Of a DNA stretch of 64,000 bases, positions 1,345 through 62,918 are shown in pieces. Source of the DNA: Piromyces finnis finn. Lineage: Eukaryota > Fungi > Neocallimastigomycota. The notes beneath the pieces were generated by a model. The model ran no database searches. It saw nothing but the letters and a program-made list of their open reading frames with translations, and was not told the DNA's origin. The stretch's first letter is position 1. Each line of letters starts with the position of its first letter. The translations under genes were made by a program, and so were the position numbers. The stretch is taken from the NCBI GenBank assembly GCA_002104945.1, contig MCFH01000005.1, forward strand, positions 992,001 to 1,056,000. The letters are read 5' to 3'.

Positions 1345-1667
1345 ATAATTTATTATTTTTATTTACTGAATCTTTTTTTTCAATAAAATAAATATGTAAT
1401 AAATAATATTCATCAATAAATAACTATACCAATAAATCATACTCAATTATTAAAATTATATTTATAAATTCTACACTTCCAACTGTTAAAAAAAATCTTA
1501 TTTATTTAATAACTCCAACAAAAATTATCACACTTTAAATTTATAGCTTTTAATTTTTAAATTTTTTCTTTTTATTTTTAATAATTTTATGCATAACTAC
1601 AATTTTTATTAATATTCTATAATAGAAAAAATAACATTATTTCTATTTAATTTTTTATAAATATTTT

Positions 1668-1765
1668 TCAACACTGATAACTGCTACTATCGATATTCTA
1701 ATAAAATTTTTACTAAATTATAGTAATAATTAATTTAGAATATAAGATAGTGCATTATCAGAGTT
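1668..1765. ncRNA. Putative pre-miRNA-like hairpin, copy 1
   Basis: 5' arm 1668-1700 pairs with 3' arm 1736-1765: ctgataa(c)tgc(t)actatc / gatagtgcattatcag, plus inner stem atattcta / tagaatat. Transcription is not shown and the strand is unresolved. Confidence 0.4.
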
Positions 1766-1804
1766 TAGTTCTTTATTTTAATTTTCAGATACATTTTACT
1801 ATAC

Positions 1805-1905
1805 TCAACACTGATAACTGCTACTATCGATAATCAAATTTTTAGGTACTACTAAAGTTTAATAATATGCTCCTTCTGATTATAAGATAGTGCATTATCA
1901 GAGTT
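1805..1905. ncRNA. Putative pre-miRNA-like hairpin, copy 2
   Basis: Arms 1805-1832 and 1881-1905 are identical to those of copy 1. The loop differs, and a different inner stem (ataatca / tgattat) still pairs. Confidence 0.4.
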
Positions 1906-3381
1906 ATTTTTTTATTACTTATTTTTTATTATTAAATTTGTTTTATTATTAGTGTACTGAATTTAAATCATATAGGAAAAAGAAAATGACTTCTTTTTAT
2001 ACTTTTTTTTTTAAATGTATATATTTAGTTAAAAACAGTTTTATTATTGTTTTACATCAAAGTTTTAATATATAATATATTATAAAATTTTTTATATATA
2101 TTTAAATAAACTATTATTATATAGTATTATTGAGAAAAATAAATAAAGTTTCAATTAAAATATTAATTGATTTTTATTGAAATTGATTGGTTTTTACTTT
2201 TAAATTGAATTTTAATGGCTATGGAGTATTACCTTAAAAAACCTTAAATTTCTTTAATTTATATTAATAAGTATATTCTATTATATAATATAATATATAT
2301 TTTTATATATTGATTTGATATACAAAGTCCAAAAAATGAGTTGAAGTAGGCTTAGAAAAAGAATATTTTCAATGACTCATTAATTTTTTTTTTCTAACGA
2401 TATATGACTTATTAATAAATAAGTCCAGGTTTTTTAATAGCTAGAAAAAGAAACAAAATTGTTTATGCAATAACCTATTATTTATAAGGCTAATAAACCA
2501 AAAAAATAGACATTTATTTTTTTTATTGTTATAAGATATCAATGTTTTTTATTATATTATTTTCAATATTCATATATAATTTTAAATCAGATAAATTTAT
2601 TATTAATTAAATTTTTTTAATTAATTTTTTTAATTAATGGACAAGAATCCAATTATTAAAATGTTTACATTATTTAATACATAACAATTTTCGTATTTAC
2701 ACAATTACATCACATTACATTACAATTAAATACATAATTTACATTCCGAATACATTAACAACTTATTGTATACACTATTAATTTACATTAATCAAATTAC
2801 AAACTAATATTATCATTAAATATGCTGTCTGTTTTTTTTTTTTTTTTTTTTTTTTTTTCATATAACGTTATGCCCACTATTTAGATAAATCTATTATATT
2901 ATTATTTGCATATTTTAAACAATAATAATGTGTAATTGAAAATATTAATTTATTATCTTCTAGTTATTAATAAAAAATAATATTAAAAATTCAAGATATA
3001 TACTAAATTATATAGTAAAAATATTTATAAAAATGTACTATTGCTATTTAGAATATTGTCCATTATTAATATTACAATAATAATAAGCATAGTAGTAATA
3101 ATAATAATTAATAATTAATAATAATATGATATTGAAATTAAGAGAAAAATAAAGTAAAAGTATATTTAGTTTTTTTAAAAAATGATCTTTTTATTTTTAT
3201 AAAATTAAAATTTTTAAATGTAAACAATTTTTATATTAATTCAAATTCTAAAATCATATATATTAAAGTTTTGATTTTGGATGATGGTTTATATTAAAAT
3301 ACTGGGATTAGTTATAATTTATTTATTAATATTTAAAAAGAAACATTATAAAATTAAGGAAAATATAACTGCTTAAAAGAA

Positions 3382-6093
3382 ATGAGTGAAGAAGTTGTTA
3401 TTGAAGGTAGAATCAATTTAATTAAAAATATAACTTTATATATTATAAAATATTATACAAATATATTTATATAATTTATTTTTTATTATGAAATATATTT
3501 CAATCTAAAATATATGATGAAAATACAGCTAATAATTTACCACCTCCAGAAAATGAGGCATTACAAAAAAAAGTTGAAGAAAAAGAAGATTCAAATGAAC
3601 AAAGTAATATAGAAATATATACAAACCCTATATTTCTAAGAATTAATTATTAATGATAGTTTCTATTTTTTTTCCTGTATTTTCTAATACATTCATACGA
3701 AATAACTAAAAAAAAAAATAAAATAAATAAGAATCATTATGGAATATTGATCAATTTATTCAACAAGAAATTGAAGATGGAAATAATAGAAAAGAAAATG
3801 AAAATGAGAATACAAACGATAAAGTTATAGGTATTGATGATGTAGAAAATGTAACTGAGGACATTAGTTATGAAGCCATTGCATTTGCTGATCCAGATAT
3901 GAATTTTTCTGATGATGAACCTTTATCATTAAATATTGATGTTTCAGGTTAATATTTTTAGTATATAAACTAAATCTATTGATACAGTACTTAAGAAATA
4001 ATGAAACATTTATTAAGCGAAATATACAAATATAATTATATATATATATACATATACATATATCAATAAACAGATGTTCCAACATGTGAACTTAATAAAT
4101 TAGATGTATATAAAACTGCGTGTGAAATAATCGATGTTATACCAGTTTCATATTACGCAGATAATATGAATAATGAAGAGCTTATTATGCGTAATCATGG
4201 ATTAGGTCCAAAAGGTGCAAAAGCAATATCTGAATCATTAAATGTAATTATTAAATGAATAATGATTAATTATATATTTGAACCTATTAAACATTATATA
4301 TATTAATATATATATAATTAAAATAGAAAACACAAATCAAAGTACTTGATTTATCAAGAAATTGGATAGGTAATTTTTTTTTTTGAATAAATCCATTAAA
4401 GAATGAATAATTGCTAAAAACTTTTGATAATAACAATAAATTTTGATTAATTATATAATTTATCAAAGATGCCGGTGGTAAATACTTAGCTAAAACTATT
4501 GCAGATAATTGTTATATAACCGAATTAAATTTATCTGACAATCATCTTGGTAATTAAATAATAATATAAATATATATATAAATTTTTATGCATTTAACAA
4601 ATTATAAACTTAAATTTTATAATATTTTTTTTTTTTTTATTTTACTATTAAGGTATAAAGGGTGGTGAATTGATGGGTTATATGATTGCACAAAATGTAT
4701 CTTTAAAAATATTAAATCTTAGCAGTAGGCATTAAATTAAACATTATAAAATAGCAATGATATATCTATAATAAGGATTAAAATAATAAATTTTATATTT
4801 ATATTAATTAATATAAATTAATATAGAAAATAACTTAAGTAATAGAGAAATAAAGGCTATAGCAGAAGGATTAAAGGAAAATAATACTTTAGTTTGTAAG
4901 TATTAAAAAAAAAAGTTTGATAAAATATAATAAAAAATTTTCTTAAAAGAAAAAATAATAAAAATATTTAAAATAAATTACTTTAGCTCTTGATTTAAGC
5001 TACAATAAAATTGGCGATATTGGTGCTTTACAACTTGGAAGAGCATTAATGGTCAATGATAGTATTAAAGTATTTAATATTGGTGAGTAAATTAATAAGA
5101 ATTATGATGATGATAATTACTAAATTATTAATATTAATAGAAACTTTAATATTTAACTTAATTATTAATTAGGATGGAATGAAATTAGAATGAAAGGAAT
5201 GGCGGCCTTTTTCCAATGTATAAAGGTATAATAGAGTTATAAACAAATAGAAATATGTATTTTTTCTATATATTATTAAAATATTTTTATATCATAATAA
5301 TTACTAAATCCTTAATTATTTTATTATATAATAATATTATAAATGTTTAGTCAAACCAGAGTATTACAGATTTAAGTGTTAATGTAAATGATTTAAATGA
5401 AGCATATATCGAATATTTAAATATTTTTGAGAATGATCAAATATTAATTTTATATTGAATATTATTATCATAAAATTACATACAAAGAATAATGGTGCAG
5501 CAGATACAGGTGGTGCAGAAATTGTTAAATATATTGATATTAATCGTGTTATAACAAGAATTAATCTTTGGTAAAAATATTATTACAGTTCATCAAATAC
5601 ATTTTATTGTTAATAGTTTTTTTTAATATTAATTATTTTTTAATATTATATATATATTTTTAAATTATAAAAACAATGAAAATAATGTTTATGATAGTTC
5701 TTGTCGACTTCCTGATAGTATCTGCCAATCTTTATTCAAGGCTTTAGAACAAAATACTGGCTTAACTGAAATTAATCTTGATTATAATTGTTTTACTGAT
5801 GAATGTTTCCAATATTTATCTAATTTCTGTCAAAAAACTACTGTTCCAAGAATTATTCATATTGAAGTAATTTTTATTTTATCTTTAATTACATATAAAT
5901 GTTTATATATTATATTTCTATAAATTATTAAAATCAATTTTTAATTAATTAATTATTATTAAACTATTATTTCTTTTTCTTTTTCTTTTCTTTTTTTTTT
6001 TTTTAAACTTAGAATATAAAATTCTCAGAAGATATTAATAAAAAACTGGAACAATTAAAGGATGAAAAATCCGATTTTACAATATATATATAA
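3382..6093 (+). CDS. LRRC74: RNI-like leucine-rich-repeat protein, LRRC74-like (about 13 exons)
   Basis: Spliced exons give YKTACEIIDVIPVSYY...MRNHGLGPKGAKAISESL followed by LDLSxNxIG-type repeats, as I recall for LRRC74A/B. GT-AG junctions keep frame from ATG 3382 to TAA 6093. Confidence 0.8.
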
Positions 6094-6465: not shown

Positions 6466-6803
6466 GTGAATTTAAAATGATAGATTTTTTTTTTTTTCTT
6501 ATTTTCTATTATTATTATTATTATTATTTTTAATAAGATTTCATTATTTTTTTTTCTTTATAGTAATGAAAATTAAATTAGTTAAATTAAATAATAATAT
6601 ATTTAATTGTAAGAATCATAATATCATTTTGTAATATGATATATAATTTTTTTTATTGTGTAAAAATAAATTATAATTATATCTAAAAGAAAAAATAATT
6701 ATAAAAGAGTTATTATTACTATTATAAATAATAAAACATACAATAATACAACTATAATTGATAAAATTTATAGAATTAGTTAAACTAATTTCGATAAATT
6801 TAT

Positions 6804-8649
6804 CTATAATTTTGGAATGTATTGTTCCTTTCTTCTAACATAATCTCTTGTAATTTGATCAATACTAGTACAACCAGCTAAAGCCATAGTTAATCTAAAT
6901 TCTTCTTGAATTATTTTTAACATTTTATCAACACCCTTATCACCATCATAACATAATGCCCAGAGAGTTGGTCTTCCGACAAAGACAGCCTTAGCACCAT
7001 AAGCAAGAGCCTTGAATACATCTGAACCTCTGTAAATACCGGAATCAAGATAGACTGGAATTCTATCTTGAACAGCTTCAGTAATCTAATTTTTTCATTT
7101 ATTATATAAATAATTTTTATTTAATATTTTTATTTCTCTTCTTTTTCCATCATAAATAAATGTCATTTATTTTTATTTTTTATTTTTGCTATTAGTTTAT
7201 TTTTATAATCTATTTAATTTCTCCAATAGAAAAGGCTACTTACTTCTGGTAAGGCTTCAATGGATGGTGGGGCACCATCTAATTGTCTACCACCATGGTT
7301 AGAAACAATAATGGCATCAACCTTGTATTTAACAGCAAGTAAGGCATCTTCAGCAGTTAAAATACCTGATAATACGAATTTTATAGAAAGAATTTTAAAT
7401 ATAAATATTATTAATTGTGATTAATATTTATTTATTCATATTTATTAAACGCTCTATATACCCTTTAAGATAATTGGTAATTTAGTAGTTTGTCTTAACC
7501 AAGCAATATCAGTAGCCCAATTTAAGGAACTATCGACGGTACCGGTCATACCTTTATTGAAAGTACCTCTATCTTCATTTTTATTTTTTTCTTCCTTTAA
7601 ATTTTGCATTTTCATATCAGATGGTCTTTTGAATTTATTTTTAGCATCTGCAATACGACGACCGAGCTTTGGACGATCAACAGTGACAACAAGACCTTGA
7701 TATCCAGCAGCTTCAGCACGCTTGATTAAATCACTAGCAGCAGTACGATCTTTATGAACGTAAAGTTGAAGGAAACGAAGACCATCTGGAGCGGCCTTAG
7801 CAACATCTTCCATAGAATAAGTTGAGTAAGTACTTAAAATCATAAGGGTATCATTAGCAGCAGCACCTAATAATTTTTTTTTTTTTTTAAAAAACGTATA
7901 TTGAAAAAAAAAAAATTGTTATTTATTTTTAAATCATTTTTATAATTAGTATTATATATATAAATGCTAAAAACATATATGAAATAAATAATAATGATAT
8001 ATACCTTTAGCAGTAGCTAATTCACCATCTGGGTGAGCTAACTTATGCATAGCCATTGGGGCTATTGATGTTTTAAAAATTTAATGGAAAATAAGTTAAT
8101 TTTTTTTTTTTTGAGTATTATTATTTTTAATAGAATTATTTTTCTATTTTTTATTTTTAACTTTTAATTTTTATTTTATTTAATACTTTACCAATACCAA
8201 TTGGCATTGAAATTTTGTGACCTAAAATATCAGCTGTAGTATCGACATTACTAACATCTCTCATAACTCTTGGTCTAATTCTAATCCTAAATTTTTGAAA
8301 AAAAAAGTTTGAAAGTATAATTATGGGTTAACTTTTTTTTTTTTATTTATATTATTAAGAATATATTCTCATTGTATTTACTTGGAGAAAGCCTTTCTGT
8401 TATTTTTACGAGTTTCATTATCCATTGCACCTAAAGCCTTTTATTTAAAAACAATAGTGTTTAATAATAGTTATTATCATATTAAAATATAGTCATTTAT
8501 TATAATTTATTCGAAGTATTTAAATAACTTTTTAAATATATATATATATATATTATTACATAATAATCATAGGATGATTTTGGCATAGTAGCCTTAGCAT
8601 AGTCATGAAAATCATCAAGAGAAACACAAACTGGCTTATTATTTGACAT
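6804..8649 (-). CDS. FMN-dependent alpha-hydroxy acid oxidase/dehydrogenase (glycolate/lactate oxidase family), no cytochrome b5 domain, C-terminus ...YIPKL*
   Basis: Family motifs LQLYVHKDR, TVDRPKLGRR, LPIILKGI, IVSNHGGRQLDG (catalytic His), DSGIYRGSDVFKALAYGA and VGRP. Multi-exon, ATG at 8649, TAG at 6804. Confidence 0.93.
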
Positions 8650-9917
8650 GGTCAACAAAATACTATATAGAATTTTTTTAAAATATAAGAAAAAACGAAG
8701 ACATAATTTTATACAGTTATTAGTAATTAATATTAGAAATTATAATTATTATTGTTATTATTAACAAATTTCCAAAATCAAATTTCAAATTAGAAATTTC
8801 GATTGGAAATGTCATTTCTATCTTTTTAAAATCTATTTTTTTTTCTTAATAAAGTTATCCCTTTTTCTTTTTTACTTATTTTATTAGTATTTTATTTTTT
8901 ATTATGAAATTTTTAAATTTTTAAATTATTTTATTTACTATTTATTTTATAAATGATTTATTCATTTTTAAAATGTTCTTTATATATATATAAATCATTT
9001 ATTTAATTATTTCTTGATAAAAGAATAAGTATTTAATTAATAAAGATATGTATATTACATTTACTTTTATATAATCTATAAAAAAAGAATAAGATTTCAA
9101 AATAACTTTTTATTTTAAAATTAGCTTTTAGAAAATTTAGAAATTTCAAAAAGTATTTTTTTTTTTGCCTAAAAATTAATAACCACAATTTTAAAGATTA
9201 TATATTAAATTTTATTGATAAGAAAATGTTATATTTTTGATAAAATCAAAATTTTTAAATTAATAAAATGTGGCGCATGACAAATTCACTTTTAATAATA
9301 GAAATACATTCTTTTTTTTGAAATAATGAAATATATACTTTGCATAATAACTCTAATGCTTTTTAATTATTAATGAATTATCATTAGTGTTAGGAATTGA
9401 AATAAAAAGTTTTATAGTGATAAAATTATAAAATTTGTAATTTTAAAAAGTCTTTTTTTTTTTTTTTTCGGAAGAACATTGATTCATTTAATTAAAAAAA
9501 TATTTAATTATTTAATTCAAAATTTATATTAAAGCCACAATGATTATGAAATTTTGAAATATATGGATCATTATTAAAAGTTTTAAATATAAATATTATA
9601 AATATACCTTTTATTAATCCTTTTTAATTGAAATAATTTCAAGTTGAGGTTAGTATAGCAGTATAGTTATTTTTTTTAATGAGTACAGAATATAAAAATG
9701 AAATATTCAAATAGATATATAACTAAATATAACTAAATGTATTACTAGTCTTATTTGTAGTAAAAACATTTAATTTAAAATTAAATTTTTCTCTAAACTA
9801 TATTATACTTGATTTAATATATATATTTTATTATATAATAAAAAATTCAATAATAAGTTAATAAAACAATAGCAACAACAAAGCAATAAGACAATTAAAG
9901 AAATAAGACAAGGAAAA

Positions 9918-15722: not shown

Positions 15723-15769
15723 GAAATGACTTAGTATTTTTTTTTTTTTTTTCATAAAAACTTAATATT

Positions 15770-15860
15770 TAAATGATTGCTAAGGCTGCTGTTATAGCTC
15801 CTTTAATATAAATTTTTTTTAATTATAAAGGACTATAGCAGTAGTCTTAATAATTATTTA
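15770..15860 (+). ncRNA. Putative pre-miRNA-like hairpin with G·U pairs
   Basis: aaggctgctgttatag(c)tccttta (15782-15805) pairs with taaaggactatagcagtagtctt (15826-15848), with three G·U pairs and one bulge. The stem extends outward via taaatgattgct / aataattattta. Confidence 0.45.
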
Positions 15861-17039
15861 AATATTAATTCTTTGCTTAGTATATACTCAAAAAAAAGGT
15901 CATTATCTCATTTTGAAAATTTTAAAAAGTATTAATATCCTAATAAAACTGATATTAAAACCAATCTTTGGTATTTTTGAAAAGATTCAATAATATTAAT
16001 GTATTATCAATTGTATTTGAATATATGATACCAATATATTTTTCTAATTAATAAGAATGTTTTATCATAATTAAATGTAAAATATGGATAATTATTAAAA
16101 AAATTTTGTTATTATTTAAAAGTATTTTTATTATAATTTAAAGTTTATTAGTGAATAATTATTATATTTTTTGTATTTTTTGTTATATATTTAATATATC
16201 ATTTTTAGTGTTTAATATTATTTTATTAAATAAACCTCTTTGTTATTATTTTTTTTCTTCAAATTCTTCTTTAAACTTTTTCACTTTCAAAATAAAAAAC
16301 AAAAAAAAAAAACAAAACTAAACTAAATTCTATGCGCAAAATTAACAATAAAAACAACATAGTCATTAAAATCAATTAATATTATTGAGGAGATATAGAC
16401 ATACATCCAAAGTATTTATATACTAATTAATTAAACAATGTTATTTTGCTATACTATATAATTAAAGCCTTTTAATAAAAGATAAAAAAGAAAAGGTAAA
16501 GGAAAAAATTTTACTCTTACTAGTAATAATAAATGTACAAATTAATGTTTTGCTAATTTTTTTTTATTTTTATTTTTATTTTTTTACATTTGTAATTCAA
16601 ATTTTATATATAATAAATAGGTTGATATACCATAAATATTATATAAAATTATTACAACAGTAATTGAAAGAAATAAAAAAACAAAATACTTCAGAATTAA
16701 AATTAAAGCATATTAAAAACAAATATAATCTTTTACAATTTTGTATATATATATAATTAATATATATGTTATTTTACCCAATAATTTTGTTATAAACTTC
16801 AAAAAATAGATATAACAAATATTTTAACAATATATATATTAAAAAATATCAGTAGTCTTTGCGTTTTTTTTTTTGTTTAATCCATTGTAACCATATTATT
16901 TGGGAAGATTTATTATATTCTTTCAATATCAAAAGATAATTTTAATTTTATTTTTAAAAAGAGAAATTTATTAATTTAAGAGAAAAATTTATAATTTTAA
17001 AAAAGAAAAATTATTTCATAAATATTATTAATTATTAAA

Positions 17040-61567: not shown

Positions 61568-62190
61568 AATATTTCTTATTATAAAGTTTATAAAGTAAAT
61601 AAATAATATAAATAAATATTTTATATTAATAATTTTATATTAATAATATATAGTTATTTTCAATAGAATGAATTAAATAAAAAGATGAATATAAAATATT
61701 AATTAAGTAAATAAACATTTATTTATAGTGACACTAATTTAAAATTTTGGTTATTTTTAAATGCAATTGAATTAATTTCATTAATTATAGAAAGCTTTAA
61801 TAAATATGTGTTAATTTCTGTGAATGCATTTATGGTTAAAATCAGCAGATATTTTTAGTTATTATAAAAACTAATAATTCATTAATTAATAATAATTAAT
61901 TGAAAAAAAAAATAAATAAACTAAATTCATGTGTAATGATCAAAATACTAATATTGATTATTTTTTATATTTCTGTATTATATTAACATAAACATAAATT
62001 CAATAATTAAAATGAATTTTGAATTTTTTTATATTATTTCTTATTGTATACTATTAAAATAAAAGAATAATAGATTAAAAAGAAACAAATAAACTTTTTA
62101 ACTAATTCTAGTTCTAGTCGTTGATTTTATATTTTTATATATTTTATCATTATAAATCATATTCAACAAAATAAATGAAATTAAATTACA

Positions 62191-62274
62191 ATTAACTTTT
62201 TTAAAAAAGTTTATGGAAAATATTCTTTTTTATTATTTAATATTTTCCATAAACTTTTGAAAAAAAAAGTTAAT
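62191..62274. repeat. Near-perfect inverted repeat (about 34-bp arms, 14-nt spacer)
   Basis: attaacttttttaaaaaagtttatggaaaatatt versus aatattttccataaacttttgaaaaaaaaagttaat. Confidence 0.85.
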
Positions 62275-62918
62275 AACTTATAACTTACTTAAAAAAATAT
62301 TGAATTCGGAATTTAAAATTAAAACATTTTTAAAATTAAATACTTTCATAATTATTGATATTGATATAAACATAAAGTAGAAGTATTACAATAAAGTTCA
62401 AATTATTCACACAATTTACTTTTTTTTTGTTAATTTTAAAAAACTAAATAACTTTTTACTGTAATTTGATTCATGTACTTATTTATTTGTTAAAATATTT
62501 TTTACATGAAAATATATATATTTATATAACATTAAGTATCCTATTTTCCTTGTATTATAGTCGAAAATATATATGTAATTTTTAGCTTCAAATAATAAAA
62601 AAAAAATAAAAATTAAAAACTTTAATAACCTTATTATACTTTATACCATTTCTCCAAAATTTTTCATATTTTAAACTTTTAACTAAAAATTTCGGTTCAT
62701 TATTTTCATTATTTTAAATAAAATGATATATGAATAAAGTTTTGAAGTATATCAATCTAAAAAATAGGTAGATTATTATTTTATCAAAATAAATATTAAC
62801 TAAAAAATTTTTTTCTTTTTTATTTTATTTACTATTCAGCATTCGATTAATAAAAAATATTACATTTAAATTAATTATTTACACAATATAGCAATTATAT
62901 AATACAAATAAAATCAAA

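Follow-up and report, generated by a model that had tools for sequence, protein, structure and literature searches.

An intergenic locus of the anaerobic gut fungus Piromyces finnis contains a tandem pair of hairpins for which the preliminary description of this DNA had proposed a role as a functional hairpin RNA, and this proposal is strongly supported by conservation and covariation. From the sequence comparisons, it is almost certain that the locus represents a structured RNA that is functional, and the promoter-like and end signals that accompany it are conserved as well. The RNA is most likely made from the minus strand, and not as part of the mRNA of the adjacent ankyrin-repeat gene. The best single mechanism, to which we assign about an even chance, is that of a Dicer-processed, miRNA-like precursor. 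The locus is a good candidate for the first conserved microRNA-like gene of the Neocallimastigomycota, a phylum for which no endogenous miRNA-like RNA is reported in the literature that we searched.

The two units, each of about 100 bases including a variable outer TC, occupy positions 1668-1765 and 1805-1905 of the window, the 64,000-nucleotide stretch of contig MCFH01000005.1 that was analyzed as a whole. On the proposed minus-strand RNA, hairpin 2 (1807-1905) comes first and hairpin 1 (1670-1765) second; both have a stem of about 38 bp, which in hairpin 2 is closed by a small terminal loop. The 5′ arm of the lower stem consists of 25 nt (minus strand; 1881-1905 in hairpin 2 and 1741-1765 in hairpin 1), and the 3′ arm consists of 26 nt (minus strand; 1807-1832 in hairpin 2 and 1670-1695 in hairpin 1) and begins with U on the minus strand. 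Each arm is identical in six of six hairpins from P. finnis and two related taxa. Between the arms lie the variable upper stem and loop (minus strand; 1833-1880 in hairpin 2 and 1696-1740 in hairpin 1), in which the sequence has diverged and the pairing is kept. The hairpins are separated by a spacer (1766-1806, minus strand) that is poorly conserved in sequence and similar in length across the three taxa.

The layout described earlier is basically correct. Within P. finnis, the 28-nt arm is identical at 1668-1695 and 1805-1832, as is the 25-nt arm at 1741-1765 and 1881-1905, and the spacing given as about 140 bp corresponds to start-to-start distances of 137 and 140 nt. Across species, the invariance of the 28-nt arm begins only at AAC (1670 and 1807), as its outermost TC varies in the related taxa. 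The inner stems indeed differ between the copies while retaining their pairing in each, and the loops, which had been called unrelated, have diverged between the copies; nevertheless, residual similarity between the copies persists, and the orthologous loops align well. Both units fold into long bulged hairpins, as had been claimed, and on either strand they are far more stable than the shuffled controls. The fold energies of hairpins 1 and 2 are -32.3 and -25.3 kcal/mol on the plus strand (z -9.2 and -4.7) and -33.1 and -31.2 kcal/mol on the minus strand (z -8.6 and -5.3), and none of the shuffled sequences folded as well as either unit.

In the minus-strand fold, the stem of each of the six hairpins runs almost without interruption for 37-41 pairs and is capped by a loop of 5-9 nt; its basal ~25 bp are invariant, and its upper ~20 bp are variable yet paired. 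The lower stem comprises 22 Watson-Crick pairs, one U·U mismatch, two one-base bulges, and one small internal loop, all of which are invariant, and no paired extension exists below this conserved duplex. With its single hairpin, few mismatches, and small bulges, the lower-stem duplex has the form required of a miRNA precursor. The arms are small G+C islands inside a spacer with a G+C content of about 15%, and T-rich runs follow both hairpins on the plus strand. Rfam covariance models gave no match over 1668-1905 at E values up to 10, and a tRNA search found none in the window. An H/ACA snoRNA was considered and rejected, since the stems are nearly continuous and hairpin 1 is followed by GAAAA, not ACA.

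The pair is unique in the genome. Each arm occurs exactly twice in the window, with no other occurrence even when three mismatches are allowed, and no arm match arose when the window was shuffled with its dinucleotides preserved. We searched the P. finnis assembly (56.46 Mb, 232 contigs) with the arm patterns at up to three mismatches, with BLAST of the 291-nt region, and with a covariance model of the six homologues, and found only the two copies at this one locus, besides a single 25-nt near-match to one arm on another contig. The suggestion that the units might be a pair of MITEs is thereby refuted, as the two copies lie at a single locus and at the same position in three taxa. The hairpins do resemble MITEs and other short elements with terminal inverted repeats (TIRs), as a short AT-rich interior lies between terminal repeats of about 25 nt that are inverted and imperfect. 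They differ from such elements in their number (two), in the lack of target-site duplication, in their orthologous placement in three taxa, and in a wobble-pair strand bias of the RNA type, which is unexpected for a DNA element. No duplicated bases were found in the hairpin flanks, and the search of the 56 Mb revealed neither further copies nor an autonomous transposon partner.

How far is the pair conserved? The intergenic hairpins follow an intronless ankyrin-repeat ORF on the plus strand, which encodes 985 amino acids and whose stop codon lies 324 nt upstream of the units. A search with its protein sequence retrieved two orthologues on metagenome contigs, with 87% (taxon A) and 81% (taxon B) identity; taxon A is represented by ten contigs, each from a different sample. 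In both taxa, the tandem pair of hairpins is again found downstream of the ankyrin stop codon, with hairpin 1 at L021:3911-4007 and L030:4094-4191 and hairpin 2 at L021:4049-4146 and L030:4229-4325. The sampling of conservation covers six hairpins from three closely related taxa, and the hairpin-bearing JGI and ENA contigs were reached solely through the ankyrin protein. The exact P. finnis ankyrin protein had no match on record. Scans with the arms gave no further homologues: the 5′ arm pattern had no match in the metagenome collections, the 3′ arm gave eleven unrelated chance matches, mostly in coding DNA, and the viral-contig collections yielded nothing relevant.

Over the 26 + 25 nt of the arms, there is not one change at the 51 positions among the six hairpins of the three taxa. 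The four-fold degenerate sites of the ankyrin gene provide the neutral yardstick, and they differ at 36% between P. finnis and taxon A, 56% between P. finnis and taxon B, and 55% between taxa A and B. The absence of any arm change across two paralogues and three lineages, measured against this yardstick, points to very strong purifying selection on the arms, stronger than that on the adjacent ankyrin protein. Meanwhile, the DNA from the stop codon to the hairpins is mostly unalignable, and its length is 324, 628, and 943 nt over the three taxa. The unit length remains constant, at 98-101 nt in the six hairpins, despite the turnover of the loops. A conserved duplex, a free loop, and a retained structure are the pattern expected of a miRNA or milRNA precursor.

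Words from the locus also occur in public sequencing runs. About 8% of the 31-mers sampled from the hairpin region occur in nine faecal metagenome runs and in compost, soil, and gut runs, and these matches may reflect the invariant arms in other gut fungi. The search also recovered the source DNA run and two further runs from the same organism, possibly of RNA, that contain all or about half of the sampled words; none of the runs is recorded as small RNA.

Which strand encodes the RNA? Apart from the unpaired bases, the arms pair by Watson-Crick pairs only, and are therefore uninformative on this point; it is the variable part that makes the minus strand more likely, and not the plus strand on which the hairpins had been read previously. 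On the minus strand, the upper stem has 98.1% of its cells paired and seven pairs changed on both sides. The covariation score is 0.217, as compared to 0.099 in the shuffles, and none of the 500 shuffles reaches 0.217. When the alignment is slid as a control, only 22-54% of the cells pair. In the 28-pair main helix (helix 1), 100% of the cells are paired on the minus strand versus 95.8% on the plus strand; four pairs of this helix are changed on both sides on the minus strand, and seven cells that are G·U on the minus strand become A·C mismatches on the plus strand.

The fold energies point in the same direction. The consensus energy calculated with RNAalifold is -27.1 kcal/mol for the minus strand and -20.1 kcal/mol for the plus strand, with covariation terms of -2.5 and about 0, respectively. 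The single-sequence folds range from -28.9 to -34.6 kcal/mol on the minus strand and from -21.3 to -32.3 kcal/mol on the plus strand. The minus-strand RNA is the more stable one in six of six hairpins, with the plus-strand fold weaker by up to 12.6 kcal/mol. Over the six folds, the G·U pairs number 17 for the minus strand, in 13 distinct column pairs, versus one for the plus strand. A transition in a DNA palindrome is expected to create G·T equally often on either strand, and the two-sided binomial probability of 13 versus 1 column pairs is about 0.002. The G·U imbalance thus argues for selection on an RNA of the minus strand. The compensatory changes and this G·U strand bias would be left unexplained if the arms were only a cluster of GATA sites, as had been offered as a further alternative.

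The flanks of the hairpins contain conserved signals in the corresponding orientation. A 16-nt block composed of an A-run and GTATAAAA(A/G)G lies at 1993-2008 on the minus strand, and is invariant in the three taxa except for the one A/G position. It includes the canonical TATA box GTATAAAA in the minus orientation, at about 2002-1994, and begins 96 nt upstream of hairpin 2, in DNA that otherwise aligns poorly. Just downstream of the TATA block is ATTTTC (1982-1987, minus strand), with invariant columns across the taxa, and the presumed 5′ leader contains a conserved A-rich block, CTAATAA..AAACAAA (1937-1952, minus strand). At the other end, a T6 run (1626-1631, minus strand) follows hairpin 1 by about 37 nt, and a T-run is aligned there in the other two taxa. 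The TATA block is not the promoter of the next gene, a leucine-rich-repeat gene, as that gene starts at about 3731 on the plus strand.

The alignments and BLAST comparisons covered the DNA up to 2061 and from 2099, on either side of the 2062-2098 segment. In local BLAST, the three-taxon similarity is limited to about 1621-2012 and ends about 45 nt past hairpin 1, while the similarity to the closer taxon A extends from about 1630 to 2035 and appears again at 2099-2306. The edges of the conserved segment coincide with the TATA box and the T-run, which suggests a compact unit of about 390 bp, with a predicted transcript of about 340 nt. The metagenome contigs end at homopolymer runs, and are therefore uninformative on the transcript ends.

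As a reference for Pol III transcription, we located two U6 snRNA genes of P. finnis, L044 and L045 (G000:C90:380707-380814 and C154:509082-509190), with a TATA-like element near -30; they are a useful Pol III promoter reference for this genome. A TCGT(T)AAA-like motif near -55 to -60 is common to the two genes, each of which ends in T8. This motif is absent from the hairpin unit, the T-runs of which are T5-T6. In addition, T4 runs occur inside some of the upper stems, and a T5 run occurs in the spacer of taxon B. The internal T-runs argue against simple Pol III transcription and, together with the absence of the U6 motif, lead us to lean toward Pol II.

Does P. finnis possess enzymes that could process such an RNA? 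The check for Dicer and Argonaute genes recommended at the outset yielded three Argonaute loci with a Piwi domain and three Dicer-like loci with two RNase III domains each. According to a published survey, Dicer, Argonaute, QDE-3, and QIP are present in four anaerobic gut fungal genomes, which have no clear RdRP, and RNAi works experimentally in one of these fungi, Pecoramyces ruminantium (PMC5796279). With RdRP lacking, endogenous double-stranded RNA has its most obvious origins in transcripts that form hairpins and in those that run convergently.

On these grounds, we propose the following model. A small, independent non-coding RNA gene would lie on the minus strand, between the plus-strand ankyrin-repeat and leucine-rich-repeat genes, and its TATA-box promoter would drive a transcript of about 340 nt with the two tandem hairpins of about 100 nt. 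The total stem of each hairpin corresponds to about two Dicer lengths, namely the invariant base of about 25 bp and the free-sequence stem of about 20 bp above it. A Dicer-like enzyme would cut the hairpins, possibly stepwise from the loop to the base, so that the lower stem would be set free as a conserved duplex of small RNAs, about 22-25 nt long. The released small RNA would then be loaded into an Argonaute. The tandem layout, the invariant duplex of Dicer length, the free upper stem of Dicer length, and the presence of several Dicer-like and Argonaute genes make this the best reading; the transcription, the polymerase, the Dicer cutting, the mature small RNA, and its targets are all elements that we infer from the sequence. 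A fuller version, in which the locus is the first deeply conserved miRNA-like cluster in the early-diverging gut fungi, driven by a TATA box and cut in two measured steps by a giant Dicer-like enzyme into one invariant duplex that is more strongly constrained than the neighboring proteins, is tentative, and we consider it somewhat less probable than the precursor mechanism itself; if true, it would point to a regulatory target that is both ancient and essential, in fungi that lack RdRP.

The proposed precursor resembles several known systems. Like clustered miRNA precursors and fungal milRNA hairpins, it consists of tandem imperfect hairpins of about 100 nt with an invariant duplex and a free apical region, and is intergenic with its own promoter, here a predicted one. 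It differs from them in that both arms are equally invariant and in that no Rfam family matches it. The long foldbacks of the plant miR159/miR319 type are processed from the loop to the base. They share with the P. finnis hairpins a conserved duplex (here predicted) at the base of a long stem and an upper stem that is kept in pairing and length, not in sequence, so that the whole spans about two Dicer steps; there is no sequence relation between them, and no detailed relationship links the Dicer-like enzymes of the fungus to plant DCL1. In being kept in related species, the locus is also similar to the few fungal milRNA loci conserved between species; such conserved small-RNA hairpins are uncommon in fungi, where a re-analysis counted no more than 25 loci shared between species (PMC9757828).

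The strongest competitor is a structured minus-strand RNA that is not diced, with its lower stems docking a double-stranded-RNA-binding protein or a non-Dicer nuclease; it could be, for example, a folded domain at the 5′ end of an antisense transcript or long non-coding RNA directed toward the ankyrin gene. We regard this as possible, though clearly less probable than the miRNA-like precursor. Both arms, and the unpaired bases within them, are invariant to the same degree, which is stricter than is usual for a passenger strand and would fit sequence-specific protein binding as well. An undiced RNA would also be suited by the bulges and mismatches, which have changed no more than the paired bases, by the synteny of the unit with the ankyrin gene in three of three taxa, and by the search for a conserved target, described below, which found none. 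Against it, the interval between the unit and the ankyrin stop codon is far from constant (324, 628, and 943 nt), the conservation stops about 45 nt past hairpin 1, and a tandem layout and a stem of two Dicer lengths are both commonly seen in small-RNA precursors.

Much less likely than the two minus-strand RNA readings are those that place the element in the ankyrin mRNA or at the DNA level. In the former, which we consider improbable, the hairpins would be a plus-strand element in a long 3′ UTR, serving as a stability, localization, or RNase III cleavage signal. They do lie downstream of the ankyrin stop codon, on the strand of the gene, in three of three taxa, their plus-strand folds are also far better than the shuffles, and the plus strand has T-rich runs after both hairpins; yet these folds are weaker by up to 12.6 kcal/mol with seven A·C mismatches in helix 1, the orientation of the TATA block is that of the minus strand, and the distance from the stop codon is not conserved. 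Finally, palindromic transcription-factor sites, a cruciform, or the domesticated TIRs of an extinct transposon are very improbable, because, although the arms are exact Watson-Crick partners that can be read on either strand, contain TGATAA/TTATCA and GATAG cores of the GATA type, and are positioned between two genes, binding to double-stranded DNA would not account for the compensatory changes of the variable stem, the 13-to-1 strand bias of G·U over A·C would stay unexplained, and the 56 Mb contain no target-site duplication, other copy, or autonomous partner.

Returning to the miRNA-like precursor, we searched for its possible targets. The sole other near-match in the genome, of 22/25 nt to one arm, is at L033:3579-3603 (G000:C113:738579-738603), inside an Argonaute ORF of 1976 aa (L033:2754-8684), where it falls in the N-terminal extension rich in Asn and Ser. 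Of the three differences, two would be tolerated as G·U wobbles by a complementary RNA. In plants, miR168 targets Argonaute in the miR168-AGO1 loop, and the 22/25-nt match inside the Argonaute ORF is reminiscent of this feedback. The best ungapped complement of the site is the plus-strand RNA, not the favored minus-strand RNA. The chance expectation for that arm is about 0.07-0.08 such matches per genome under an i.i.d. model, and chance matches are more frequent in codon-structured, low-complexity DNA than this estimate implies. Unlike a miR168-type site, the match is absent from the three Argonaute orthologues: it is kept in none of P0121, P0122, and P0123. In the Argonaute from a taxon A sample, in which the hairpin arms are identical, the site differs at about ten of the 25 positions, and the other two orthologues lack the region of the site in the alignment. 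In the ankyrin and Argonaute mRNAs, none of the arms had a conserved site. Argonaute feedback was accordingly rejected, and the near-match is probably a chance coincidence, or at most a species-specific target.

The locus provides a precise candidate, with defined coordinates, strand, predicted promoter, and expected small-RNA positions. If the miRNA-like precursor is confirmed, it would show that a fungal phylum of early divergence has miRNA-like regulation, and that this regulation is under strong selection. The hairpins would also constitute a natural scaffold for knock-down tools in the biotechnologically important gut fungi.

Several features of the genes and of the window are recorded here in their own right. 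The Argonaute at L033:2754-8684 has a low-complexity N-terminal extension of about 1,100 aa before its ArgoN/PAZ/Mid/Piwi core. In the Argonaute orthologues of three metagenomic relatives (L034, L037, and L039; 1970-2260 aa), the length of the extension is kept while its sequence diverges rapidly.

A fold scan of the whole window indicated that long AT-rich hairpins are rare but not unique. Two others are intergenic, at 15761-15870 (plus strand) and 62181-62290 (minus strand), with energies of -47.1 and -33.2 kcal/mol, respectively, and the former has several G·U pairs on the plus strand. Neither has any sequence relation to the tandem pair, and in the remainder of the window, the covariance model picked up nothing beyond a weak, generic hairpin match at 15776-15856.

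On the other side of the hairpins from the ankyrin ORF, a seemingly empty AT-rich spacer contains the leucine-rich-repeat (RNI-like) gene at 3731-5571 of the window (plus strand), a multi-exon gene with many short exons. A search with one of its exons returned only one short contig, and the gene has about 71% DNA identity to taxon A over 2 kb. The next clear gene beyond it, at 6800-8700 on the minus strand, comprises exons of a protein similar to FMN-dependent 2-hydroxy-acid oxidases/dehydrogenases.
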